This document shows, piece by piece, positions 499-64,000 of a stretch of DNA of 64,000 nucleotides. The stretch is from Macrostomum lignano (lineage: Eukaryota), in contig NIVC01000245.1 in NCBI GenBank assembly GCA_002269645.1, positions 248,001 to 312,000 on the forward strand. Reading direction: 5' to 3'. Under the pieces are notes generated by a model. That model ran no database searches, was not told the origin of the DNA, and was given only the letters and a program-made list of their open reading frames with translations. Made by a program: the position numbers and the translations under genes. The first letter of the stretch is position 1. Every line of letters begins with the position of its first letter.

Positions 499-1960
499 CT
501 AGTTGCGCTGGCTCTCGCGGCCGGCCCACAGCTGACCTTTGATCAGCTCGTCGCAGTCGATGCCGATCATGGCTTCGCCAAGGTCTTCGCTAACTCGCGC
601 CAGAAACTCCGGATCTCTGTAGTGCGTCACCGCCTGCACCATAGCCTCGGCGCGCTTCTGCGGGTTGGCGCTCTTGAAGATGCCGGAGCCGACGAACACA
701 CCGTCCACGCCGAGTTGCATCAGCATCGACACGTCGGCCGGGGTGGCCAGACCGCCGGCGGCGAAATTCACTACGGGCAGGCGGCCCTGACGCTTCACTT
801 CTTTGAGTAGGCCGTGATGCACCTTGAGAGGTTGAAACAGTAATTTAATGTAGGTTTATGAGATTTATGAAATACATATTGCGCTCCTAGAAATCATATA
901 GATATTGTTCAAAAGCTTCTTTAGATATTCTTCAGAGATTGCTTAGGGATTAATCAGAGACTTATCCCAAAGAGTTCCCAAGGGATTGCGCAGAGATTAC
1001 TCCAGCATCAATCTTCGCCCCTTGTTGCATAGAGTTAGTTCGCCTCCAGTCACAAGAACCAAATTCCGCGCACCTGCAGCTGCTTAGCATATGAGTACAG
1101 TTCGTCGTCGTCCATCACTTTAGCCGCGCGCATCTCCCGATTCAACGCCCTAGCGTGACGCACCGCCTCGATGACGTTGCCGGTACCGGCCTCGCCTTTG
1201 GTGCGCATCATGGCTGCGCCCTCCGCGATGCGACGCAGCGCTTCGCCGAGATTCCGACAGCCGCAGACGAATGGGATCTTGAAACTGTGCTTGTCAATGT
1301 GGTTCTCTGGATCGGCTGGTGTTAGAACTGTGGCGATGGATCACATTTTTTTCAACAGTTAAAAGTGGTGACTCGAATAGTGGTGGATTTGGATAATGGT
1401 GATCGAAATATGGCGTGAGACTTTTCGTAAGATATACGCCGATGAAGGTCCATGCACACGCTCCGTGTCGGCCCTTTGAATTTATTTTTGCTTCTTTGCC
1501 TAACGCCTATCTGCTACAGGGATGTACAGGATAAGGTCATATGACGCAACTCACCCTCCGACTCGTCGATCATGTCAACTCCGATAGCTTGCAGAATCTG
1601 CGCCTCAGCAAAGTGGCCAATTCTGGCTTTGGCCATCACCGGAATTGTGACGGCGCTCATGATCTCTTTGATCAGCTTTGGATCCGTCATTCGAGCGACG
1701 CCGCCCTGCTTGCGAATGTCAGCCGGTACTCGCTCCAGAGCCATCACTGCGCACGCCTGCAACGTAACGGTCGACCATAGATTTGCTAAAACCATATGAA
1801 ATCTTTTATAAATACTGCACTACTATCTTACCCCCGCTTCCTCGGCAATTTTTGCCTGCTCCGCATTTACAACATCCATGACGAGTCCGCCTTTGGTCAT
1901 CTTGGCTAGGCCAGTCTTTACCGTGTAGGTGCCAATCACTGAATCACCGTTGCTGGTCAT
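499..1960 (-). CDS. PDX1: Pyridoxal 5'-phosphate synthase subunit PDX1 (SNZ/PdxS), 4 exons, 302 aa
   Basis: Exons 1960-1832, 1756-1555, 1327-1074 and 822-499 total 909 nt, all with GT-AG introns in matching phase. The protein has the family motifs [74 protein letters not shown] and [11 protein letters not shown]. Catalytic Asp and Lys residues equivalent to B. subtilis PdxS D24, K81 and K149 are present. Confidence 0.96.
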
Positions 1961-2633
1961 TGTCCCGGGAATAAGGTAAAGCTGATGATAAAGGTGAAGT
2001 CTAAACTAACGACACGAAACGAATATCGAATGCAGTAGCAGCGACTCTCGCCTAGCGCATGTGCCGCCTCTTTAAAGACTAGCCGTGCATCAGAGCAAAA
2101 GTTTTAGCAGCGTTTCTGGCCTGTCTCGCAGCTCATTGGGTCTGCAAATGTCAAGGGGCTGAGCAAACTTTCGCACTGTACAAACAGGGCTTGCCCTCTC
2201 CCCCACCGAGAGAAAACGTGGGAAACTCTGCAACTAAATGCAGCCTATCTTTACACCTGGCCACTGTGCTGGGTGCGAGTGCTAACGAACTAGCGAGCAA
2301 ATAATAGAAAAAATTGAGGGAGCTGAGGTTGTCTGTAATATGCGTTCCGCAGAGGCAGAGAATTTCACCGGGAGTGAACAGTTATTAGCCTTCTGTACCG
2401 AGCGGTGCACAACACGCAGACAAATCGCCCAGCCCCAGCCAGCTGAGAGGACAGGAAAGTTAGCCAGCCACAGGTCCCAAGAATTCCGACGGAGGACCGC
2501 GTGTTGACTTAACCTGCCAATCTCACAAAGTCTGCTTCTTAAATTTTAATCGTGAGAAAGTGAGAGAAACTTTTCCATCCGACAGAACCCGAAGAGCAAA
2601 CATCTGAGCAGAGTTTTCGGAGAACGCGGAGCC
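1961..2633. promoter_or_regulatory. Putative bidirectional promoter shared by PDX1 and PDX2
   Basis: 673 bp lie between two divergent ATGs, so both promoters and 5' UTRs must fit here. An NRF1-like GCGCATGTGC is at 2055-2064. Confidence 0.6.
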
Positions 2634-5600
2634 ATGCCTCAACTAAAGATCGGATTGCTAGCAATTCAAGGTGCATTCATTGAGCACAGGAATCTGCTGG
2701 AGTCGGCTGTTGAACAGCTTCAGCAAGAGCAACGGCAGAAGAAGCAGAACTCGAAGGATTGCTACTCAGTTGAAGCAATCGAAGTCCGCAGGGGCGACCA
2801 GCTCACTGAGGACCTTGACGCGCTCATCATCCCGGGCGGAGAGAGCACCACAGTGGCAAAGTTTATGCAACAAAATGGACTGCTTGATGCATACAAAGTC
2901 TGGTTCAGCGGCAAGTGTACTTTAAATGCTATGGGCAAGGTTGCAAATAATTTTAGTAGCGCAAAAATATAGGAATTTACCTAGCTTAGCTCTAGAGTTG
3001 GGCGCTGTACTATTATTACTCTCAGTCACGTCTTTAGGTTTTGACGAGTCTCAGGTACAGATTTCAGAAACATTTCTTAGTATAGACATGTCCATAATTT
3101 CCACTGTTTTGAAACAGCAGAAAACATTTCCACTCTATAGATACGTAGAAAAGAACTCAGATCAGTTTTTTTTAAAAGTAGCAAGCTACATGTAAGCTTC
3201 ACTGACACCTGCTACCTGCACTGAACTGCAGAGACCAACCCCAGAGCGGTTGTCTGGGGCATCTGTGCCGGCCTCATTGCTCTGTCAGATCGAGTGGTCG
3301 ATATGAAAACTGGCGGTCAGACTTTGGTAAGAGTAATTTTGGTTCGAATTCTTTGACGAAAAAGGCTTTCTCAATCCTTGCTCAAGGGGTCAGCGAAAGG
3401 TGGACGGTCATTTCATCGAAAACCTTTTCGTCTTTTCGTCATTTTGGAACGTAAATGTGTGCGTGCTTTGAAAGTTGGATTTCAATAAATGTTTTTTAAA
3501 TAAGAAATTTGATGAATGATGCCTTGTTAAAACAGGTCAGTATCGGAAAGTACCGGTAACTATACGAGTACCTGTTGTTTTAAAGTGGTGTTTCTAAGAA
3601 AAATCCCGTATATTCAACTACCAGGGGGAATCCAAGGACTGTACTTACGATGAACACTAGATCTACCTCCTATAAAAAGCAATAACAATTTCGTTCTGAA
3701 GAAATGAAAATCTCCTATCCGTAAATTTTTCGGAAAACCTGTCTCCTAAAATTTTCCAAGAAACGAGGTTACCCGTCCAACTTGAGTAGTCTTTAAGGGA
3801 ACCGTGTTACATTATTTTGATCATCTGATTGTAAAAAATATTCATTACAACGTACTTAATTATGCTTTTTCCTCTTAATTTTTTACACTAGTATTAGTCT
3901 AAAGTATTTACTTCAATTTAACTTTGAAATCACGCTCATGACTACTTTTTACCATTTGACGAAATTTTCCACATTGGTTTTCTCATTATTATTAATTTAA
4001 TCTAAACCCACGTGGAGACACGTTGCAGGAATAAAATTCTCTCGGAAACTTCTGTTCAAGTATATGTAAAATAGCTACACTGTGTAGATTTGAAAGTCAA
4101 TCTAGTTTTATAAAACATCAAAGAGATCTGCCGACCCGATTATAGAACTGTTTAACTGGGGCTGACACTACAACCTTATCAACTAAGTAAGAATGTAATT
4201 AAGAATGCACAGGTGCTTCGCGCTGGTGCTACCTGACGAAACGGCTAACCGAAAACGTGTTTATCCAACTAACTAAAGAATTGCATTAATTATCGCATTA
4301 CAATTTGGATACAAGCGCGTTGGGGCAAGAAAGGTTAAATTAGGCATAGCCAACGTTAAGGTACAATTGCAATCTGATATCAGTTTATTCATAGTTATTT
4401 TTTTCCAATTAAAATGCAACACTAAATGCTGAACTCTCGCTTACAGATCCAAGGACTGGCAGTCACAACCGACCGAAACTTTTATGGAAGGCAAAGAGAA
4501 AGTTTTGAGTGTCAAATCGAACTCAAACCTGTTGAGGACATTTCCGACTGTAATGGTGAGAGTATGGAGCGGTTTCAAACAGCAAATTAGATTACTTCTT
4601 TATCTGGCGCCTCAATTCCTCATCTGGCGCCTCACTTCCTTATCTGGCGCCTCAATTCCTCATCTGGCGCCTCAATTCCTCATCTGGCGCCTCAATTCCT
4701 CATCTGGCGCCTCACTTCCTCATCTGGCGCCTCACTTCCTCATCTGGCGCCTCACTTCCTTATCTGGCGCCTCACTTCTTCATCTGGCGCCTTACTTCTT
4801 TATCTGGCGCCTCAATTCCTCATGTGGCGCCTCAATCCCTCATGTGGCGCCTCACTTTCTCATCTAGCGCCTCACTTCCTCATCTGGCGCCCTAATTCTT
4901 AATTTGGCGCCTCAAGTCCTCATCTGGCGCCTCACTTCCTTATCTGGCGCCTCACTTTCTCATCTAGCGCCTCAATTCCTCATCTGGCGCCTCACTTCCT
5001 TATCTGGCGCCTCAATTCCTCATCTGGCACCTTAATTTCTCATCTGGCGCCTTAATTCCTCATCTGGCGCCTCAATTCCTTATCTGGCGCCTCAATTCTT
5101 CATCTGGCGCCTCAGTTCTTTATCTGGCGCCTCAATTCCACATCTGGCGCTTCAAGTTCACATCTGGCGCCTCACTTCCTTATCTGGCGCCTCAATTCCT
5201 CATCTGGCACCTTAATTTCTCATCTGGCGCCTCAAGTCCTCATCTGGCGCCTCAATTCCTTATCTGGCGCCTCAATTCCTCATCTGGCGCCTCACTTCTT
5301 AATCTGGCGCCTCAATTCCTCATCTGGCACCTTAATTTCTCATCTGGCGCCTCAATTCCTCATCTAGCGCCTCAATTCCTTATCTGGCGCCTCAATTCCT
5401 CATCTGGCGCCTCACTTCTTTATCTGGCGCCTCAATTTCACATCTGGCGCCTCAATTCCTCATGTGGCGCCTCAATCCCTCATGTGGCGGCTCACTTTCT
5501 CATCTAGCGCCTCACTTCCTCATCTGGCGCCCTAATTCTTAATCTGGCGCCTCAATTCCACATCTGGCGCCTCAAGTCCTCATCTGGCGCCTTAATTTCT

Positions 5601-6111
5601 CATCTGGCGCCTCACTTCCTCATCTGGCGCCTTAATTTCTCATCTGGCGCCTCACTTCTTCATATGGGGCCTCACTTCCTTATCTGGCGCCTTGATTTCT
5701 CATCTGGCGCCTCACTTCTTCATATGGGGCCTCACTTCCTCATCTGGCGCCTTGATTTCTCATCTGGCGCCTCACTCCTTAATTCGTAATTTTAATATGG
5801 GACATAAGCTCGTATATAATGCTATCACAATAAACATCACTTAACTGAAGTGAATATGCTTCTAAATTTAAATCAATACCCAATAAACCGATTCTGCAGA
5901 ATATTTTCCTGGAGTGTTCATTCGAGCGCCAAAAATACTCAGCATCGACAAGCCAGAGTCCGTTCGCGTACTCGCCACGGTCAACTCTTATCCCGTTGCG
6001 GTGGCCCAGGATCGAATCCTGGCCTGCAGCTTTCATCCGGAGCTCACGGAGGACCCACGGCTGCACCTGGTGCTGCTGAAGATGGTTCTGAGGAGCAGGG
6101 GCGAGCTTTAG
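2634..6111 (+). CDS. PDX2: Pyridoxal 5'-phosphate synthase glutaminase subunit PDX2 (SNO/PdxT), 4 exons, 230 aa
   Basis: Exons 2634-2910, 3232-3326, 4447-4555 and 5900-6111 total 693 nt. Motifs: GLLAIQGAFIEH, LIIPGGESTT, VWGICAGLI (nucleophile Cys), RNFYGRQRESF, FPGVFIRAP and SFHPEL (His-Glu of the triad). Intron 1 most likely uses a GC donor. Confidence 0.94.
4595..5778 (+). repeat. 20-bp minisatellite (CATCTGGCGCCTCAMTTCCT)n in PDX2 intron 3
   Basis: About 59 tandem units with an invariant GGCGCC core. Confidence 0.95.
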
Positions 6112-6290: not shown

Positions 6291-6645
<355 letters not shown>

Positions 6646-6888
6646 CTTGTGCTCCAATATCTATTCTCACTTTACAAAATGACAGAGTAATTGCAAACAT
6701 AAATATCTTTACCATATTAGGACGATACACCATCCGAATTTCTTCGCGTTCCAATTCATCCGAATGCCATATCTGGGCCACTCCAACGTCTGTCTAGAGG
6801 TGAAGCAGGTGCATGATGCCCAATGTGCCATGTTGGTCGTGATTAACATCTGTCTCAGCAACTCTTCATGGTAGATTGAATCGTGCAG

Positions 6889-8456
6889 CAGTCTGGTCGT
6901 TCTAGCCGTGTTCTACGAAAGGCGCCTAAGGCTGCCCAGTAACTACTACGTGGTGAGCCTTGCAGTGGCGGACCTGGCCATTGGAATCGCGGTTGTGCCA
7001 ATATCGGCCGTGTACGAAATCGCAACCCGTTGGCTCCTGGGACAGGCCCTCTGCAGGATGTGGATTAGCGCCGATATCACCTGTTGTACAGCGTCAATTA
7101 TCAATCTGTGCGCCATCAGTTTTGATAGGTACCGAGCACTGTCGCAGCCCATGCTCTATCCGCAGTACTCGACTGCTAAGCGGTCCTGCATCACCATCAC
7201 GGGAATCTGGGCTGCCTCTCTGGCCATCAGCACTCCCACACTGTTTGGAGTTGGCATTGAGAAGCGCCAATCTAATCAGTGCCTACTGGCTAAACGATCC
7301 CCGTTTGTAGTGTTCTCAGCCTGCGGCAGTTTCTTCATACCGCTCTGCATCATGCTAGTATTATATCGGCTGATTTTTAAAATAGCCAACAAACAGAGAA
7401 GAAAGATACAGCGCGGTCAGTCGGTTGGTTTCAGCCACTTGAACAACGATATGTACGCCGATAGCGGGTCTGAGATGTCGCTAAATCACAGTCCCTGTTT
7501 GCAATCAGCATCTGGTAGGCCGCTTCTGTTGAAGCAACAACAACAGCAGCAGCAGCAACAACAACAGCATCCAAATCGGCCTCACAATTTGCCCGCGTTA
7601 ATCCTTCAGCGAGACTCCTGCGCCAGTTTCACAGGCATCGGAGTGCCGGCTTTTAAGAGTTCGCCTAAGGGGTCTGTGTCTTCAGGTGAGCTCATGTTGA
7701 CTATCGATTTTTAACAGGACTGGCAGTTATCAAAACCCAAGTTCCAATCCGCTTTAATTTGGGCGTCTTTTAGAGTGTTTTCTTATATAAATTATTTTCG
7801 GATGACAAGACATTTCTGGCTTAGGAAATAGAGATTTCAATGTCGGAGCCAACGATCAAGTCTCTGATTTGAACTCAGAGAGTTCAAAAGCGGTCTCATC
7901 AGCAAGTTCACACTATTTGAGAGTGCTACTAAGAGAAATGGTTGTCTATGCTTCAAACTATGCTGCAACAATGCACTTAACTCAAAGTTAATCCGATTCA
8001 CCCGCCGCAGGAGACAGCATAGCGATTGCGTCGTCGTCGCACGCAGCCGCCCTCGCCCAGCAGCGACGCCAGAGCGGCAGGCGGCCCAAGCTGCTGGCCA
8101 AGAATCCGGTTGCTCAACGCCTCAGACGTCTCGGCTCGCACACGAAAGCCGCTAAAACTCTCGGCATTGTTGTTGGCGCTTTCGTCTTTTGCTGGGGTCC
8201 GTTCTTCTTCACTTACCTGCTGCACGGCGTCTGTTACTCCTGTCGAGTGCCGGACACCTTGGTGAAGTACTTCGTGTGGCTGGGCTACTGCAACAGCTTC
8301 CTGAATCCGATCATCTATCCGTGCTTAAACAAAGACTTTCGACGAGCATTTCGGAAGTTGTTAACGAGGCATTATTGCAAGAGAAAGTCGTTGGATTATT
8401 GGAATAGCAGACGGCAGTCGGTTACTCAGCTTATTAAGGCGTCGAGGCACCTGCGA
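6889..8456 (+). CDS. Aminergic class A GPCR (octopamine-alpha / alpha1-adrenergic-like), end of TM1 to TM7; 5' exon not found
   Basis: Exons 6889-7685 and 8011-8456 (or to the stop at 8486 if not spliced further). Motifs: SLAVADL (TM2), WISADITCCTASIINLCAISFDRY (TM3 Asp plus DRY), FSACGSFFIP (TM5), TKAAKTLGIVVGAFVFCWGPFF (TM6) and WLGYCNSFLNPIIYPC (TM7). Confidence 0.92.
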
Positions 8457-8645: not shown

Positions 8646-10656
8646 GACACCAACTACACCGGTTCATCGGGCACTCCGCCGGAATCGCCCTACAGTTCCA
8701 GCCGTTCGCCTAGCTTCTTTTCCAGTCGCTCCGGCTCGTTTCTGTCCCCAATGGACGCCCTAAAACGGTCGCGAGCCGACAGTCGCCAGTCGTCAGAGGA
8801 CGACGGCGCGTCGGCTTACCAGGAGCTGCTGCCGGGCGGCCACTCTGCTTCCTGGCGACGCCGGCTGAGTAGTCGACGATCGAGCAGTCGGCGATTCTCG
8901 TTTCTGTCGTCGTCAAGTGGGTACACCTGTAATCGCACCGATCAGCGACTGTCGTGCGCGTCCACGGATACCAGGTGGATACTTTGTGGATATACAAGAC
9001 TAATATTCACATTTTATCGTATTTTTGTCCCGTTCATTGTATAGACACAGTTTTTAATCAGACAACTATCGGGCTACGTACACAGTTCACTGAGGTACTG
9101 TACCCTATGACCCATAATTAGACTTTCCAATCAGCTACCCTCTAAACAAAAGTTCAACAGAAAACTTTAAACACAAAGTCCCTTTCAACTCCGATTATCT
9201 TCTCAGATCCACCGATATGACCGATAAAGTTGACGGTGGACAGGGCGGATCGAATCTTACATCGGCAGCAGCGGCGGCTGCAGCTGCAGCAGCTTCAACT
9301 CTCGGCGGCGGTGGCGGTGGCGGAGGCAGCAGCGGCGGAGGCTGCAGCATCGACAGCAAAGATCCGGGCTTGAGCTCCGGTGTGTACTTCCATCATCATC
9401 ACCAGCCCTTGCATCGCAGGCAGAGCAGTTTGAAGATAATACAGAAGCAGCAGAAGCATCAGCAACAGCAGCAGCAGCAGTACCATCCATCTCAGGCTTC
9501 GGCTAGTTCAACCGCCTATCAGCACCATCATCAGCAGCAACATCAGCGTCACCATCAGGAAGATCCAGACGCAATCATCTGCGAAGACGACGATCAAGAA
9601 AGCCAGCAGCTGCAACAGCCAGACCAGCCTGTTAAGAAGAGAAAATCTCGAACCAACAGTCTACCGGCAATATTCGAGAAAATCGAAGTAAAGCTCTGGC
9701 AACGACGTCGGACTAGAAAGTCAAAAAAGATCCGCGACTGGCTCGCCTCAGACCAGTCGTCTACTGGAGTCAAGGACACCACGTCCTCGGTCACTGACAT
9801 CAGCGACTCGGACGCTTTCGACGATTCCGGGCCGCACGTCGGTTCGCGCATGAAAGAATCGGCGCTGTTCCACCACCCCATCAGACAGGCCAACCATCCG
9901 GTCTGCGGCATGACCCGCCGGAACACGGTCAGCGGAAATCGTCCAGAGCCGCACCGACGACCGAGCCTGCTGGTCAACGACACGCTGATTGACTTCAACA
10001 ACAGCCAGGACCATCGGCTCAGCATCTACACCATTGAGGAGAGTCCACGCCGGGAGAGCGGCTCCTCCTGCAGCGGCTTCAGCTTCTCGCGCACCAGCGG
10101 CTTCCGTCTGGACAAAGCCGCAGCTTCATCTAGCGGTGGCGGCGGCGGCGGTGGCGGAAGCAGCACAGGGGGCGGCTTTGACCGTGAGGGCAGCGAAGTG
10201 TCGCAGGGCTCGCAGGGCGACGTCAGCGGCCAGACGAGTCCCAGATGCGGCCGGACGGCAAAGCGCGAATCGCTAACTGTCGAGTCCGTGTGGAGCCGAG
10301 TCAACAAGCAGCGACCAAGCGCCGATTCCAGCAACTCGTCGGCTAACGGTCACGAGAGGACGCCGAGCCCGTCGCAAAGTGTCATCAGTCAGAGCAGCGG
10401 CTTTGGTCTAGAGCATCTGTACAGCGGCTCCAGTCCAGGTGGCGGCACAGGTGGAGGCAGTGGCGGCGGCGGAGCCAGCGGCGTCGGGTTCAACATCAGC
10501 CCGCCAGCGAGCAGCAAGACCAGCGCTGTGGTTGAATACGCGGACGGAGCAACGCAGACGGACGATCTGATTGAATGTCAGGCGAATCAGGACAGCGCCA
10601 CGGAGCCCATTGCCAATCCCGTGTGCTACTTTGTTTACGAAGAGTCGTTCGTGTGA
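8646..10656 (+). CDS. Probable extended low-complexity C-terminal tail of the GPCR (exons 8646-8974 and 9207-10656)
   Basis: CGA|GTAAGC at 8457 joins ttcag|GAC at 8646 in phase 0. CAG|GTGGAT at 8975 joins tctcag|A at 9207 in phase 2. The last exon contains the 479-aa ORF, rich in poly-Q/G/H/S and RRxS motifs, ending EESFV. It could instead be a separate gene. Confidence 0.6.
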
Positions 10657-11924: not shown

Positions 11925-14270
11925 CCAAGATTGTGTCTGTAACACCAAAGAAAATGTTTTTTTCTTAGAATTCGTGTCTGTAAAATTCATGTGATAGTGT
12001 CTGTATCACCAATATGATCGTGTCTGTAACACCAATATGATCGTGTCTGTATCATCAATATGATCGTGTCTGTAACACCAATATGATCGTGTCTGTATCA
12101 CCAATATGATCGTGTCTGTATCACCAATATGATCGTGTCTGTATCACCAATATGATCGTGTCTGTATCACCAATATGATCGTGTCTGTATCACCAATATG
12201 ATCGTGTCTGTAACACCAATGTGATCGTGTCTGTAACACCAATGTGATTATGTCTGTAACGCCAATATGATCGTGTTTGTAAAACCAATATGATCGTGTC
12301 TGTAACACCAATATGATTGTGTCTGTAACACCAATATAATCGTGTCTGTAACACCAATATGATCGTGTTTGTAAAACCAATATGATCGTGTCTGTATCAC
12401 CAATATGATCGTGTCTGTAACACCAATATGATCATGTCTGTAACACCAATGTGATCGTGTCTGTAACACCAATGTGATTATGTCTGTAACACCAATATGA
12501 TCGTGTTTGTAAAACCAATATGATCGTGTCTGTAACACCAATATGATTGTGTCTGTATCACCAATATAATCGTGTCTGTAACACCAATATGATCGTGTTT
12601 GTAAAACCAATATGATCGTGTCTGTATCACCAATATGATCGTGTCTGTAACACCAATATGATCATGTCTGTAACACCAATGTGATCGTGTCTGTAACACC
12701 AATGTGATTATGTCTGTAACACCAATATGATCGTGTTTGTAAAACCAATATGATCGTGTCTGTAACACCAATATGATTGTGTCTGTAACACCAATATGAT
12801 CGTGTCTGTAACACCAATGTGATTATGTCTGTAACACCAATATGATCGTGTCTGTATCACCAATATGATCGTGTCTGTAACACCAATATGATAGTGTCTG
12901 TAACACCAATATGATCGTGTCTGTAACACCAATATGATCGTGTCTGTAACACCAATATGATCATGTCTGTATCACCAATATGATCGTGTCTGTAACACCA
13001 ATATGATCGTGTCTGTAACATCCATTGTGATCGTGTCTGTAACACCAATGTGATTATGTCTGTAACACCAATATGATCGTGTTTGTAAAACCAATATGAT
13101 CGTGTCTGTAACACCAATATGATTGTGTCTGTAACACCAATATGATCGTGTCTGTAACACAAATGTGATCGTGTCTGTAACACCAATATGATCATGTCTG
13201 TATCACCAATATGATCGTGTCTGTAACACCAATATGATCGTGTCTGTATCACCAATATGATCGTGTCTGTAACACCAATATGATAGTGTCTGTAACACCA
13301 ATATTATCGTGTCTGTAACACCAATATGATCGTGTCTGTAACACCAATATGATCGTGTCTGTAACACCAATATGATCGTGTCTGTATCACCAATATGATC
13401 GTGTCTGTAACACCAATGTGATTATGTCTGTAACACCAATATGATCGTGTCTGTATCACCAATATGATCGTGTCTGTAACACCAATATGATAGTGTCTGT
13501 AACACCAATATGATCATGTCTGTATCACCAATATGATCGTGTCTGTAACACCAATATGATCGTGTCTGTAACATCCATTGTGATCGTGTCTGTAACACCA
13601 ATGTGATTATGTCTGTAACACCAATATGATCGTGTTTGTAAAACCAATATGATCGTGTCTGTAACACCAATATGATTGTGTCTGTAACACCAATATGATC
13701 GTGTCTGTAACACAAATGTGATCGTGTCTGTAACACCAATATGATCATGTCTGTATCACCAATATGATCGTGTCTGTAACACCAATATGATCGTGTCTGT
13801 ATCACCAATATGATCGTGTCTGTAACACCAATATGATAGTGTCTGTAACACCAATATTATCGTGTCTGTAACACCAATATGATCGTGTCTGTAACACCAA
13901 TATGATCGTGTCTGTAACACCAATATGATCGTGTCTGTATCACCAATATGATCGTGTCTGTAACACCAATATGATCGTGTCTGTATCACCAATATGATCG
14001 TGTCTGTATCACCAATATGATTGTGTCTGTAACACCAATATGATCGTGTCTGTAACACCAATGTGATCGTGTTTGTAACACAAATGTGATCGGGTCTGTA
14101 AGATCACTATGATCGTGTCTGTAGCACCAATATGATCGTGTCTGTAACACAAATGTGATCGTGTCTGTAACACCAATATGATCGTGTCTGTAACACCAAT
14201 ATGATCGTGTCTGTAACATCCATTGTAATCGTGCCTGTAACACTAATAATTGTGTCTGTAACACCAAAAT
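11925..14270 (+). repeat. 23-bp satellite (TGTCTGTAACACCAATATGATCG)n with higher-order repeats
   Basis: About 100 units. Variant patterns recur at a 230-bp period and a block of about 553-565 bp is duplicated. Confidence 0.95.
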
Positions 14271-14903: not shown

Positions 14904-40576
<25,673 letters not shown>

Positions 40577-42887: not shown

Positions 42888-43409
42888 CCATAGACTATGC
42901 GTTTTTAGTCTTCTAAGCAAGTAGATGTTCGTAGTATGCTAGTTAACTTTACACAGGCCTACTGGATATACTAGCTAGAAAGCAAGTCAGGTGAGTCAAC
43001 GCCTATGAAATTTGAAACCTATCTGTTAAGTAAAGAAGTATTGGCAGGTGCTTTGACACCTCACGCTCGCTCTGAAGAAATGACACGCGACAGGGCACTA
43101 TTCTAGTCTGGTTTTCTTTTGCACTCCGAGCTTCAATTATTACCTGATCAGGTGCTTGTCACCACTTGGATTTGCCAAACTACAGTACATTTGAATCGAG
43201 CTAGCTAAGGTTCACGACGGAGTAATTAACTTCGCGTGCGGCAACAAACTCGTGATGCATGCAAATACTCGTGTGCCATTCGGATGGCAACTCAATTTGA
43301 TGCAGAGCCACTGAATGGCTTTGGGGTTTGAGCTGAGCATAAGAAGCCCATGCACCTCCTCTGTCACCCCGCCTTTAGCTGCTAATGAGCGAAATGGAAT
43401 GCTTTGTGT

Positions 43410-43635
<226 letters not shown>

Positions 43636-44514
43636 GTCATTACGAGCTAATATCTTAGTTTTGGTTCTTCAGTCCATACGATCCTGGAGCGACACACAGA
43701 AGTATCGTTATTTTCTAAACTTCATTTTCTTTCGAAACGATTCTAAAACAGGATGGAAAGTTTTTTGTAAAATAAAGCTTTTTTCAACTATAGAATCTAC
43801 CCAACCGTGAGTCAACCCGCACTCGAACCAAAGCGGGCCAAGAGGTAAGTCATCGTCTACGCCCAGTTTAAAGTCCTCTCAAGTCTCTTAGCCCTCGCCA
43901 GCCACAGAGCAGACGACTCACCCCCCCCCCCCACCTCAGTCATGCCTCACCCGCCTCATCAGTACAATTAGCTACACCAAGCAACGCTTTTTGAGCAGAC
44001 AAGCCCGGCTGTACGAGCGTATCCAGTTTTAGACCGGATTAGAGCGAGCGATGTGAAAAAAATGATGACGCGCTATAAAGATGCCTGTGTGCACGGTGGG
44101 GCTGGATGGGGAGGACGCAGTGCGGGGAGAGAAACTGCATGTGTGACGCTTTCATAAAGGTCTTGGGCTAACACTCTGCCTGTATCTATGCCAGTTGACT
44201 GACTGCTCTGGGAAGGAAGAGAGAGAATGAGAGCTGTGAGGAACAAGCATTCATTCTATAGAGGGACCAAATGCGGAGGGCGCATACGTCCAACCTCTCT
44301 GCTGAGGACGAGGAAGGCCTGAGTAGCCGCTATTTTTTATTTCAACAATGGAAGCTCAGTCCTATTGTGTGTCGCTGGCTGTATTTTTCATCATCAGGGA
44401 ACCCTCTTCTCCCAGTATTGCTAGTGTTATTTTTATTAATGTTATCAATGCTCTTCCATACCTTCTCTGAGAATCTGTTTAACAAAAATTGTAACAAGTC
44501 TTCATAGAGAGCAG

Positions 44515-44935
<421 letters not shown>

Positions 44936-50874: not shown

Positions 50875-50896
50875 CCTGTCTGTCTGTCTGTCTGCC

Positions 50897-50957
<61 letters not shown>

Positions 50958-50960
50958 GCC

Positions 50961-51017
<57 letters not shown>

Positions 51018-51018
51018 T

Positions 51019-51069
<51 letters not shown>

Positions 51070-51088
51070 GCCTGTCTGTCTGTCTTAG

Positions 51089-51165
<77 letters not shown>

Positions 51166-51191
51166 GCCTGTCTGTCTGTCTGTCTGTCTCG

Positions 51192-51228
<37 letters not shown>

Positions 51229-51260
51229 TAGTGTCTGTCTGTCTTGTGTCTGTCTGTCCT

Positions 51261-51329
<69 letters not shown>

Positions 51330-51349
51330 ATGTCTGTCTGTCTGTCTCG

Positions 51350-51398
<49 letters not shown>

Positions 51399-51405
51399 TT
51401 CTGTC
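50875..51405 (+). repeat. (TCTG)n microsatellite
   Basis: Read directly from the sequence. Confidence 0.95.
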
Positions 51406-55581: not shown

Positions 55582-55717
55582 CATCGATGCACAGCTCGCA
55601 TTCTGCTGCAGGCTTGGCTGAGGAATTTTAGTAGTTGGGGAGCGAGCCGGACTGCTTCGGGATCATTGGGGATGACGAATCGCTGACTCAGATAAAAGTG
55701 CTGTTGGGTGACTAACC

Positions 55718-56432
<715 letters not shown>

Positions 56433-56924
56433 CAGTCGGTGCCAGTGTGTATACGATAAACTGCGCCCAGCATCGAATAAAAAGCAGCTGAGCTGGCAAG
56501 ATTTGAGAGATCACAGCGGCAGTGACACACGCACACAGAGATTGGTGTAGTCAAGCCTCCGTTGCCCATAGCTCTGCGGAAAAAGATGGATGAAGACAGT
56601 AAAATCCCCACGCCCTAAGATCCTATCAGAACCAGTCTCATTCTCCCAGCTCAAGGCTCACCCCCAAAAACTGGATAGCAACTCGCGCAAAGTTCGAGCC
56701 AAAACAAGTCGTCTACGGAAGAAGAGCAACTTCACCACCAACTCGATTTCTCTCAGCTCGAAACCGCATAGCAAATTGCATTGAATCTTGGCTAATCTTC
56801 GGCAAGTGTCGGTCTAAAGGACTATGCAGGCGACCCAGGAGGAGGCGTCGCCACCTCCGAGGCAGCTGGATAGATCGGTGGGTGACCCACTGGTGATGGG
56901 GCAAAGATTTTGGATTTCTATAGG

Positions 56925-59055: not shown

Positions 59056-62000
59056 TCGGACCCAAGTCAGAATTTTCTGCGCGTTGCCAGGGCCGGAAAT
59101 TTGGAGAAGGTCTTGGACTACCTGGAGTGCGGAACCAGAATCGATACCAGCAATGCTGTGAGTGTTTTTCCTCGGTTTGAAAGTGCTTGTAGTCTTTATT
59201 CACAGGTGTCTGCAGAGCGCATAGTAACAAGTACACATGCTTAAAATCGCTAAAAATTCACACCCTTGGAATATCGTATCCTTAGAAAGTCACACCCTTA
59301 CAATGTCACACCATTATAATGTCACACTCTTAGATTGATACACCCTTAGAACGTCACCCCCTTAGAATTTCACACCCTTAAAATTTCAAACCATTAGAAG
59401 GTCACACCTTTACAATGTGCCGCCGTTAGAATGTCCCGCCGATAGAATGTCACACCTTTAGAATTTCACATCATTAGAATGTCACACCATTCGAACATCA
59501 CATCATTAGAATGTCACACCATTCGAATGTCACACCATTAGAATATCACACCATTAGAATGTCACAACATTCGAATATCACATCATTAGAATGGAACACC
59601 ATTCGAATGTCACAACATTAGGATGTCACAACATTCGGATGTCACACCATTAGAATGTCACACCGTTAGAATGTCACACCATAAGAATGTCCCAACATTA
59701 GAATGTCACATCCTTTAAATGTCAAACTCTTCAAATTTCACACCCTTGCACTAATTTTCTGTCATAAGAACTAATTAAGCCACTAATTAATTAGGGAATT
59801 AAGCCATTGTTGAGTAGGGAATTACACAATTGCTGAGTAGGGAATTACACCATTGCTGACTAGGGAATTACTTTATTCCTGAGTAGGGTATTACTCCATT
59901 TCTGTGTAGGGAATTACACCATTTCTGACTAGGGAATTACACCATTGCTGAGGGGAATTACTCAATCAACGAAGGAGAACTTGGTGGATAGCTGAAGAGT
60001 TTAGTGGGACTTCACCTTAGTTGGAGAACTTTAAACAAGTTTTCCGAATTTTCTCAAGTAACTACTTGTCAAACTACTTAGCAAGAGTAGTAAGTGAAGC
60101 TCTGTGTCGCCCTAATATGAGCTATCATGGCTGTCTATCTCTCTCTCCCTCTCTCACGCCCACTTTGCGAAACGCAGTTGTCAGACCGTAGAAAAATCGA
60201 TGGAATCCTCACGATAAGCGTCTTTACTGACGATAGAAGGTTGGCATTTATTGTTCGAAGCCAGTATAGTACATGAAATTTTGTGTGCCTATGCTTGCTG
60301 CACCTTGCCGTGATTCGCGATATACTCGCCTAAAACTGTTTGCAGGTAGGCAGATATGCGGCCAACCCTAACCCTAGCGAGCTAGCTGCAATTGCACAGA
60401 TGGCGCACCTTTCCAATACAGCCAACGGCAACGAACTACTTTCGCTCCTTACCTCCACCCCCTACCCCCACCCCGAACTCCACAACCCGAAGGTCAAAAC
60501 TTGGCATCGCGTAGGGGGGGGGGTAGGGATCGAAGACTGACGCTGGGAAATGCGGATTATTTTAGTATCTATAAGGTGGACGGACGCCTTCGCTGTCGAC
60601 TGGTAAGGAAAAGCACTATACGCATCCTGCGTGTGAGAGAGAGAGAGAGTGAACGATGAAAACAAAATTGAACGTCGGTTGCTGCTAGGAATTAGCTGGC
60701 CAACCACTGCGAACTGGGGAAATTTTTCCTTAGACCTACCTTTGCCCACCTTAGCCCGAGAGGAGAGTGAAAAGGCCTGTTTGCCAGTCTCCGACGCAGT
60801 AGAAGCAGAAAAGTTCTTCGACTTCTTCTTCTACTTTGCGTTAGCTCTCTCCATCATTATCTGTCTTTCTTTCGCCTTCTTCTTCTGTTCGGCAAAACTT
60901 CAACTTCGGAGAGACAAGCGTGCGAATTACAAAGAGATAAAGAGAGCCGCGTGCAACCAGTTATTAGAAGAGAAGAGAGTTACTTTTTTACCTTCGCAGC
61001 ATCCGGCCGAATCATTTTGTGCTGTTTGAATTGGCCCGATTATATACTACTGCCAGAATTTCTGTCGATTTTCGTTTAGTTGGGGGTGCTTCTCAGTAGC
61101 TAATAAACTGGTTATTTTGTAACCTGAAAGGCGGAACTAAATCATGAGCTCGTCAGCGGCTGGGACCGCCAAAATTTTTTCCAAATCGTTGAAAAGACAA
61201 CGACACGCGGTACCGCCGGATATTGAGCGGTATTTGAATTTCTACGACGAAAAGGTAGGGGATTCGTTATAATAGCTAGTTTACTTCGGTTCTTCATCTA
61301 GCCATTGATACTCGTCTATGTTGATTGAGTACTTCACAGTCCGAGAAATAACCCATTGAGTACTTGACAATCTGAGCAATTCCTCATTGAGTACTTGACA
61401 ATCTGAGCATTTTCCATTGAGTACTTGACAATCTGAGCAATTCCTCATTGAGTACTTGACAATCTGAGAAAATCCCTATTGAGTACTTCGCAATCCGAGA
61501 AATTTCTCCTGAGTGGTAAAGCTACCGCTATTTTCACTCAGCTACGCTTTTACCTCATCTGAGTTACTTGTCGCTGTCTCTTTTGAGTACAGATTAATAT
61601 AGAAATTATTTTGATAGTTTATCACTTTTAAAACCCGCACAGAATGGACTCAACGCTCTGCACCTGGCCAGCAAGGAGGGCCACACGGCGGTGGTACAGG
61701 AGCTATTATCCAGAGGCGCAGACCCGGACGCTCGCACCAAGAAAGGCAACAGCGCATTGCACATCGCATCGCTTGCAGGCCAGCTCGAAGTTGTGAAATT
61801 GCTGATCGAACGGGGCGCCAAAGTGAACTGCCAGTCGCAGGCGGGCTTCTCACCGCTCTACATGGCCGCTCAGGAGAATCATCTGGAAGTTGTTCGACAC
61901 CTGATAGCGTCGGGTGCGTCGCAGAGTCTGGCTACAACCGACGGATTCACTCCGTTAGCGGTGGCGCTTCAACAGGGACACGACAAAGTGGTGGCGGTGC

Positions 62001-63839
62001 TCCTGGAGACGGACACTCGCTGCCGGTCGCGGATGCCGGCGCTGCACGTGGCCGCTAAGAAGGACGACGTACGCAGTGCAGGATTGCTGCTCACATCCGA
62101 CTGCGATCCCAATCATCAGGTGAGTGGTGCTGACAACAATGCAAGTCAAAGGCTTTTTTATTAGAGGCAGGGGGGTTGTGTGCACCCTGGCGCACTTTAA
62201 GCGACATAGGCACACAACCGGCGAGAGGCATTACTGCCCATTCCGCCGACTCCCCTGAGCAGGCATACAAGCGCGCAAATACGTACGCAGGCACACACTC
62301 ACACAGGAGTGTACAGCGGCCCTAACTTTATATTATCATTAGGCATGTACACTTCACTGCGCCTTGGGAGGTTGGCTCTCAAGGCCGTTAATTGCACGAG
62401 CAGAGCCAAGCCGAGATTCCAATTCAGCCCCAAATTAATGTGACTGCACTTGGAATCGAGCCTGGGTCGCTGGCACACCAGAGCAGCTGCGCTACCACTG
62501 GGCTACGCCCCCCCCCCCAAGTCAAAGGCTACTAAGGGTACAACTAATTTTCCATATTTTAATGTCGAATCTTATCGAATATTATCGCTTTGGGACACTT
62601 TGGGATGATCATCTTGGTTGCGCCGCGGAAAGGAGCACCATCATGGGGGCTCCGCCAGCGGTAGGCCCAATTAGTTGTGGAATTACCTAAATATTGAAAA
62701 CGGAGACACCAAATCAACGGGAAAGGTACTTTTGCGAGCCTACATGTATTAGGGCAAAGCATCCTTGCTCATTGGCTATGCACCTGAAACATTCTTTGTC
62801 AACTATAATTGTAATTGATCATATGTTCGTGAATTTTATCATATATTGTTTCGTCTGGGGCTTCAACGTGAATGTTAAAAGTTGATCTATCTATTTGAAA
62901 ATCGTCTTTTTATCAGCTAAGACGAAAAATCCGACAACACTACGCTCGTGTATTTCCTACCAGGCCGGCAGCGGCTTCACGGCGTTGCACATTGCCGCCC
63001 ACTACGGCAGCGCAGGTGTAGCCAGCCTGCTGCTGGACCGCGGCGCCGATCCGAACTTCCCGGCGCGCAACGGCATCGCTCCGCTGCACGTGGCCGCCAA
63101 ATGGGGCATGCTGTCCGTGGCGCAGAAGCTCCTTGAACGCGGCGCCGCGGTCGACGCTCGAACGCGCGACGGATTGACAGCCGTTCACTGCGCCGCCAGA
63201 TCTGGACAGACGGCCGTATTGAAGCTGCTCCTCGAGTTGAACGCTGGTATTGATCTGCGCTCGAGGAGCGGCCTGAGCCCGTTGCACATGGCCGTGCAAG
63301 GCGACCACACAGACTGTGCCAGACTGCTGCTAGCTCGTGGCGCCAACAGCGAGGACGTCACCGTGGATCAGCTGACACCGTTGCACATTGCGGCCCACTG
63401 CGGCTACGTCAGCTCAACGCAGCTACTACTAGACAGCGGATGTAGAGCGAGCGCACGAGCGTTAAATGGCTTCACCGCGCTGCACATCGCCTGCAAGAAG
63501 GGCCGGGTGCGCATTGTTGAGCTGTTGCTCAACTACGGAGCCGAACCGGACGCAGCCACCGATGTCACGGGTCTGACACCGTTGCACGTGGCCGCGTTCT
63601 TAGGACAGACAGCTTGCGCCGCACTACTCGTCGACAAGGGCAGGGGAAATGCGTCCGCGGTGACAGCCAAGGGGGAGACTCCGCTGCACATGGCTATGAG
63701 AGGCGGGCACACCGAGACAGCCAGGCTCCTGCTCGAACAGACGAAGGTGAACGCGGACGCCGCCGCAACGGATGGACAGACGTCGCTTCATGTGGCGTGT
63801 CGGACTGGCAACACTGAAGCTGTAGAACTTCTGCTCAAG
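59056..63839 (+). CDS. ANK: Ankyrin (ANK2/unc-44-type membrane-binding domain), partial; continues beyond the window
   Basis: Exons 59056-59157, 61643-62119 and 62964-63839 are all phase 0. [17 protein letters not shown]...SNA|[63 protein letters not shown] and [12 protein letters not shown] are diagnostic of canonical ankyrin repeats 1 to about 14. Confidence 0.95.
59260..59750 (+). repeat. 16-bp minisatellite (CATTAGAATGTCACAC)n
   Basis: Read directly from the sequence. Confidence 0.88.
59800..59960 (+). repeat. 23-bp tandem repeat (GAGTAGGGAATTACACCATTGCT)n
   Basis: About 6 units. Confidence 0.8.
61144..61254 (+). CDS. Candidate alternative first exon of ankyrin (37 aa, [10 protein letters not shown]...FYDEK)
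   Basis: ATG in an ATCATGA context, an open 111-nt frame and a phase-0 donor AAG|GTAGGG that splices in frame to NGLNALHL at 61643. Confidence 0.5.
61335..61500 (+). repeat. 29-31-bp tandem repeat (ATTGAGTACTTGACAATCTGAGCAATTCCTC)
   Basis: About 5 units. Confidence 0.8.
62335..62510 (-). mobile_element. tRNA-derived SINE in an ankyrin intron
   Basis: Minus-strand A box TAGCCCAGTGG (62505-62495) and B box GGCTCGATTCC (62462-62452). The body is shared with 32995-33135. Confidence 0.8.
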
Positions 63840-64000
63840 GTGAGGCTTTACTAGTTTCGCAGTATCTGTTACATGTACCTGTTTAATAAAATTTTTAGGG
63901 TCCGCAAATATACCGTCTTAGCAACCGCACAAGCATTTGTTATAATGCGTCATTTGGTACACAAAGAATAACTCTCTGATAATGTTTCTACGTATTGTAA

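Follow-up and report, generated by a model that had tools for sequence, protein, structure and literature searches.

The question raised by this locus is whether a bilaterian animal carries its own genes for de novo vitamin B6 synthesis and, if so, whether they were retained from an animal ancestor or acquired from another organism. The locus belongs to Macrostomum lignano (assembly GCA_002269645.1, contig NIVC01000245.1, positions 248,001 to 312,000 of the forward strand), and this stretch of 64,000 nucleotides is called the window; positions are those of the window unless another contig is named. Two divergently oriented genes, PDX1 and PDX2, occupy 499-6111. In the PdxS/PdxT and PDX1/PDX2 systems, the two proteins alone suffice for the formation of pyridoxal 5'-phosphate (PLP). 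The flatworm pair very probably encodes the two subunits of a deoxyxylulose 5-phosphate (DXP)-independent PLP (vitamin B6) synthase that was vertically inherited from an animal ancestor. An earlier reading of the same DNA, here called the original prediction, had proposed an intact pair and left its origin as retained or acquired.

Structure of PDX1 and PDX2

PDX1 lies on the minus strand (499-1960). Splicing of its open frames gives four exons and an uninterrupted protein of 302 amino acids, and every intron is of the GT-AG type. Exon 1 (1832-1960) starts with the ATG at 1960-1958, encodes Asp29 of the MDV motif, and ends at a GTAAGA donor. Exon 2 (1555-1756) encodes Lys86 (MAK) and Asp107 (DESE), exon 3 (1074-1327) encodes Arg152 and Lys154 (RTKGE), and exon 4 (499-822) encodes the phosphate-binding GSGIF region and the C-terminal tail, with the stop codon at 499-501. 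The protein matches the Pfam family SOR_SNZ (4.7e-108, 360 bits against a cut-off of 27) and passes two PdxS equivalog models of NCBIfam, NF003215 (494 bits, cut-off 395) and TIGR00343 (473 bits, cut-off 438); the PdxS equivalog covers the complete 302 residues from end to end.

Arabidopsis PDX1.3 is the best solved-structure match of PDX1 (1.4e-131, full length). The catalytic set is kept entirely, namely D29 (MDV), K86 (MAK), D107 (DESE), and R152 with K154 (RTK), and in the alignment K86 and K154 match both lysines of PDX1.3. PDX1 scores 441 bits against the catalytic PDX1.3 and 307 bits against the non-catalytic PDX1.2. By this bit-score test, PDX1 would be of the catalytic type and not a PDX1.2-type pseudoenzyme.

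PDX2 lies on the plus strand (2634-6111) and likewise gives four exons and an uninterrupted protein, of 230 amino acids, when its open frames are spliced. Exon 1 (2634-2910) encodes Gln12 and the PGGEST motif, exon 2 (3232-3326) the catalytic Cys104 in GICAG, exon 3 (4447-4555) the RNxxGRQ segment, and exon 4 (5900-6111, stop codon at 6109-6111) His206 and Glu208 in FHPE. The protein matches the Pfam family SNO (8.3e-46, 156.7 bits against a cut-off of 27) and the PdxT equivalog TIGR03800 (168.5 bits against 105.55), and it falls below the cut-off of the narrower PdxT model NF010050 (102 against 181). The triad C104, H206, and E208 is kept together with Q12 and PGGEST. C104, H206, E208, and PGGEST align with the Geobacillus PdxT structure (1.7e-35), and Bacillus PdxT also aligns. 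The original prediction of two intact, intron-containing genes of these lengths is therefore borne out by splicing and by the family cut-offs, and its catalytic residues were recovered in the alignments with the PDX1.3 and PdxT structures.

The 230-amino-acid model of PDX2 requires a GC-AG intron 1, with the donor G/GCAAGT after 2910 and the acceptor before 3232. A GT-AG option, which uses a GT donor after 2914 and an acceptor at 3245, gives 227 amino acids. Both models are open, and each is found among database models. The GC-AG model is favoured because its intron, in phase 1, falls in the same alignment column as an intron of the annelid Owenia.

A homologue search with PDX2 returned four M. 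lignano proteins at 74-97% identity, and the next match reached only 44%. The UniProt models P0122 and P0123 follow the window exon by exon and are residue-identical to it. They also translate 2587-2633 in frame, 5' of the PDX2 ATG, and the 5' untranslated region of PDX2 takes in at least this stretch. The translated 5' stretch suggests that the UniProt models derive from transcripts.

Second copy of the segment and selection

A second M. lignano locus, L005 (contig NIVC01001239.1 of the same assembly), carries a SOR_SNZ gene of 302 amino acids on the minus strand and a SNO gene of 230 amino acids on the plus strand, 673 bp apart. With 94-98% identity, the window and L005 are colinear from PDX1 through a G protein-coupled receptor (GPCR) gene and on into the minisatellites that follow it. 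The NCBI model P0121, which is encoded on L005, is a 95% copy of the window PDX2. The whole PDX1-PDX2-GPCR segment is thus present at least twice in the M. lignano genome, in diverged copies, in keeping with a recent genome duplication that has been reported in M. lignano. A homologue search with PDX1 returned no M. lignano PDX1 protein among its matches (best 77%), despite the gene call on L005; this is attributed to incomplete coverage by the searched database rather than to absence of the protein.

The second copy bears directly on whether the pair could be an artefact, in which genes of food diatoms or of another organism were misjoined to flatworm genes. The extreme repeat load of the window (40 tandem arrays in 64 kb, overlapping calls included) makes misassembly plausible in principle. 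However, L005 repeats the PDX1-PDX2-GPCR order and the downstream repeats at 2-6% divergence, as a separate copy built from other reads. The phylogeny of the pair is metazoan, and its GC content at third codon positions (GC3) is like that of its neighbours. GC3 is 0.72 for PDX1 and 0.58 for PDX2, against 0.59-0.72 for adjoining host genes, and because these values lie in the range of the neighbouring host genes, no foreign composition is apparent. The chimeric assembly that the original prediction had named as a threat was not found: a chimeric join is ruled out because L005 shows the same gene order, colinear at high identity. Misassembly or contamination has next to no probability as an explanation of the pair.

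Comparison of the two copies also gives a measure of constraint. PDX1 differs by 8 synonymous and 1 non-synonymous substitutions, a ratio of non-synonymous to synonymous rates (dN/dS) of 0.04 (binomial p = 7e-5), and PDX2 differs by 6 synonymous and 6 non-synonymous substitutions (dN/dS 0.30, p = 0.04). The six amino acid changes in PDX2 are all conservative, and none affects a motif. Neither gene is interrupted in the window or in L005. PDX1 and PDX2 are under purifying selection.

A 20-bp minisatellite of 58.7 copies (4602-5774) lies inside PDX2 intron 3. The array of about 59 copies in the window corresponds to a clearly shorter array in L005 (11963-12675 of that locus), and its length has changed after the duplication. 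Splice choice separates the database models P0122-P0124: the residues QTLIQ are dropped at the exon 2/3 junction, exon 2 is skipped, or exon 3 is skipped. In P0124 the 5' part is of the window type and the 3' part of the L005 type, a mixture that suggests either a chimeric model or a third copy.

Ancestry of the pair

All named best matches of PDX1 come from animals and have 74-80% identity; they belong to annelids, copepods, sponges, and a tunicate. The phylogenetic check proposed by the original prediction was carried out with neighbour-joining trees of PDX1 and PDX2 and 200 bootstrap replicates. The presumed bacterial sequences of the PDX1 tree consisted of one named bacterium and proteins on long contigs. 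The window PDX1 falls inside a clade that holds every named animal sequence, with a bootstrap value of 100%; the presumed bacterial sequences and those of the fungi and the plant lie outside this metazoan clade. The PDX2 tree also places the window with metazoans, at 60%.

Intron positions, the second check proposed, were compared after the PDX1 exon structures of Capitella, Owenia, Clavelina, and Amphimedon had been rebuilt and aligned. Each of the three PDX1 introns has a counterpart of identical column and phase in another animal. Intron 1 (after codon 43, phase 0) is common to Capitella, Clavelina, and Owenia; intron 2 (phase 1) to Capitella, Owenia, Clavelina, and the sponge Amphimedon; and intron 3 (phase 0) to Clavelina. 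Four other PDX1 introns have been lost in the flatworm. Two of the three PDX2 introns match other animals exactly in column and phase: intron 1, shared with Owenia as described above, and intron 2 (phase 0, between GGQxx and IxG), which is common to Owenia, Capitella, Clavelina, and the sponge Dysidea. Intron 3 (phase 1) lies at most two residues from an annelid phase-1 intron, in a poorly aligned stretch. For Clavelina PDX2 only internal junctions were used, as no full-length model matched the annotated 246 amino acids, and for Capitella PDX2 the best splice sites were chosen among 12 equally long models.

The arrangement of the genes is shared as well. SNO and SNZ stand head-to-head, 228-2377 bp apart, in six of the seven animal loci compared with the flatworm. 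These are the annelids Capitella (427 bp), Owenia (780 bp), Paralvinella (2377 bp), and Dimorphilus (517 bp), the tunicate Clavelina (1067 bp), and the sponge Dysidea (228 bp). The rarity implied by the original prediction was thus overstated, as six of the animals compared (one sponge, one tunicate, and four annelids) have the linked pair, and database models of the M. lignano genes already exist.

These findings bear on whether the pair was acquired horizontally, from a bacterium, a fungus, or an alga, and gained its introns later, as proposed for the nematode Heterodera glycines. In favour of such a transfer, the strong conservation of PDX1 brings its bacterial identity (about 72-73%) within a few points of that to animals (74-79%), the best solved-structure match of PDX1 is a plant protein, and many fungi (40-44%) are among the named top matches of PDX2 outside its own species. 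In contrast, the metazoan PDX1 clade has full bootstrap support, every PDX1 intron and two PDX2 introns occur at the codon and phase seen in annelids, the tunicate, or sponges, the divergent pair is kept in six other animals, and codon GC3 is like that of host genes. Nesting in a bacterial clade and lineage-specific introns, the pattern of the Heterodera case, were not found in the flatworm pair. Horizontal acquisition is very improbable. Ancestral retention by vertical descent is supported instead, because the animal clade of PDX1, the shared introns, the same divergent pair in other animals, and host-like GC3 all point to it. Of the two origins left by the original prediction, retention gains support and acquisition loses it.

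Two further loci show variants of the arrangement. The Dysidea avara locus L006 (10001-17715 and 22490-27217) contains two SOR_SNZ genes of 314 amino acids within 17 kb, only one of them paired head-to-head with SNO, and a gene for a PLP-dependent decarboxylase at a distance of 6 kb. A Tara Oceans marine metagenome contig, L009 (1881-3594), carries intronless SNZ (306 amino acids) and SNO (205 amino acids) head-to-head, 175 bp apart. The contig is apparently eukaryotic, with Patched and sterol-sensing fragments. Outside Macrostomum, the SNO of this contig ranks with the nearest relatives of the window PDX2 (44%).

Shared 5' region

PDX1 and PDX2 are separated by 673 bp from ATG to ATG (1961-2633), in agreement with the divergent orientation and spacing originally claimed. 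This intergenic region is a putative bidirectional promoter. Between the window and L005 it diverges at 1.5% of aligned sites, compared with 4.1% for the introns (Fisher p = 8e-4), and its low divergence fits regulatory constraint. Most likely, the region is one bidirectional promoter that balances PDX1 and PDX2, because the layout is kept from sponges to a chordate and the region evolves more slowly.

Proposed function

A reaction sequence can be proposed from what is established for PdxS/PdxT and PDX1/PDX2. The Cys-His-Glu triad of PDX2 would hydrolyse glutamine, and the ammonia would be channelled to PDX1. On the (beta/alpha)8 barrel of PDX1, ribose 5-phosphate would be held as a Schiff base on Lys86. 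Ammonia and glyceraldehyde 3-phosphate would then be added on PDX1, the intermediate would be relayed from Lys86 to Lys154, and PLP would be released. Divergent transcription from the shared 673-bp region may keep the two subunits in step. Enzyme activity, B6 prototrophy, and co-regulation of PDX1 and PDX2 are what we infer from the sequences.

Several points weigh against a working, vertically inherited synthase. The trees were built by neighbour joining from a sampling biased to top matches, and the support for the metazoan position of PDX2 is moderate. No SNO gene was found within 10 kb of Amphimedon PDX1, so the arrangement is not universal. The estimate of PDX2 constraint comes from 12 substitutions only. 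The donor of intron 1 in the 230-amino-acid PDX2 model is a non-canonical GC, and the database includes isoforms without the catalytic-Cys exon (P0123) or without exon 3 (P0124). Because database isoforms skip exon 2 or exon 3, PDX2 output may be partly non-productive. Cultured M. lignano eats diatoms, which are a dietary source of B6, and the selective need for the pathway is not obvious.

Some of these points would also be expected if the genes no longer made PLP, with PDX1 being PDX1.2-like or having a role in stress or singlet-oxygen resistance and PDX2 decaying through aberrant splicing. The GC donor, the several exon-skipping isoforms, the higher dN/dS of PDX2, and the access of the animal to dietary B6 speak for this explanation. 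However, PDX1 and PDX2 have all of their catalytic residues, the dN/dS of PDX1 is very low, PDX1 scores far higher to PDX1.3 than to PDX1.2, both copies of both genes are open, and the six PDX2 replacements are conservative and spare the motifs. Loss of PLP synthesis is unlikely, and a vertically inherited PLP synthase remains the preferred interpretation. A broader claim has about even chances: that M. lignano is a true B6 prototroph and that its divergent pair is among the oldest conserved in animals, possibly from an ancestor shared with fungi.

Neighbouring genes and repeats

The neighbouring genes are animal genes, in line with the metazoan context originally described. A rhodopsin-type GPCR (7tm_1) lies at 6908-7714, a metabotropic glutamate receptor (ANF_receptor, NCD3G, and 7tm_3) extends across 14904-39319, about 25 kb, and ankyrin repeats are found at 61691-63854. 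An open frame of 479 amino acids (9217-10656, plus strand) with runs of Gly, Gln, His, and Ser lies just 3' of the GPCR exon and is 98% conserved in L005. It is without a Pfam match. It could belong to the receptor, as its long third intracellular loop or its tail, or be a separate low-complexity gene.

The tandem-repeat load of the window is extreme, with 40 Tandem Repeats Finder rows in 64 kb, some of which are overlapping calls of one array. Some arrays have 80-230 copies at periods of 3-24 bp, and most lie in glutamate-receptor introns or intergenic DNA; examples are 11972-14267, 16305-17865, 21713-22862, 24104-26033, 35436-36371, and 44515-44935. A (TGTC)n / (CAGA)n microsatellite occurs at at least four sites (6299-6647, 43407-43638, 50876-51405, and 55717-56435) and produces long spurious open reading frames, read as CLSV or DRQT repeats, on both strands.

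Relation to known systems and significance

The yeast genes SNZ1 and SNO1 are adjacent, divergently transcribed, and co-regulated. They encode the same enzyme in Saccharomyces cerevisiae, and SNZ1 matches PDX1 at 3e-112. The yeast genes are fungal and intronless, whereas the flatworm pair has introns. PdxS-PdxT of Bacillus subtilis and Geobacillus and PDX1.3-PDX2 of Arabidopsis are full-length matches with identical catalytic residues. In contrast to the bacterial PdxS-PdxT genes, which form a co-directional operon, the flatworm genes carry spliceosomal introns, and flatworm PDX2 differs from bacterial PdxT by an insertion of the eukaryotic type that follows the first strand (residues ~25-45).

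Among animals, both genes are also present in Heterodera glycines, where SNZ/SNO are held to have been transferred horizontally from bacteria (Craig et al. 2008, cited in PMC4901422). The flatworm pair is instead vertically inherited, as judged by clade, introns, and synteny. The first animal copies to be described were SNZERR and SNO of the sponge Suberites domuncula (Seack et al. 2001, cited in PMC7954711). These likewise form an animal PDX1/PDX2 pair, and the Suberites SNO is 43% identical to the window PDX2. The Suberites genes are reportedly linked and divergently oriented, with a shared promoter. The PDX1 proteins of the sponges Amphimedon, Dysidea, and Halisarca fall in the same 100% clade as the flatworm protein, in a tree drawn up without Suberites PDX1. 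Dysidea has the same head-to-head layout and the same PDX2 intron 2. The flatworm differs from the sponges in that the host is bilaterian, in that it has three PDX1 introns compared with six in Amphimedon, and in its diverged copies, at least two per genome.

A 2021 review states that animals cannot make B6, with 'some sponges' as the sole exception (PMC7954711). 'SNZERR-like' PDX1 is already named in the public annotation of many invertebrates, including copepods. A literature search found no paper that ties Macrostomum or flatworms to B6 synthesis, nor did it find a survey that follows the conserved pair and its introns across animals. The flatworm pair encodes a canonical enzyme, offers no new mechanism, and is of low novelty. 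Its significance is that an intact pair with the same layout and introns in a sponge, annelids, a tunicate, and a flatworm corrects the textbook generalisation on animals. Because the pair survives in these lineages, the pattern is one of losses that happened repeatedly, not of early loss. RNA interference and transgenesis are available in M. lignano, a laboratory model, so the role of the pathway in an animal is directly testable. If prototrophy and the ancient origin of the pair are true, M. lignano would be a tractable bilaterian in which to ask why most animal lineages dropped the pathway.

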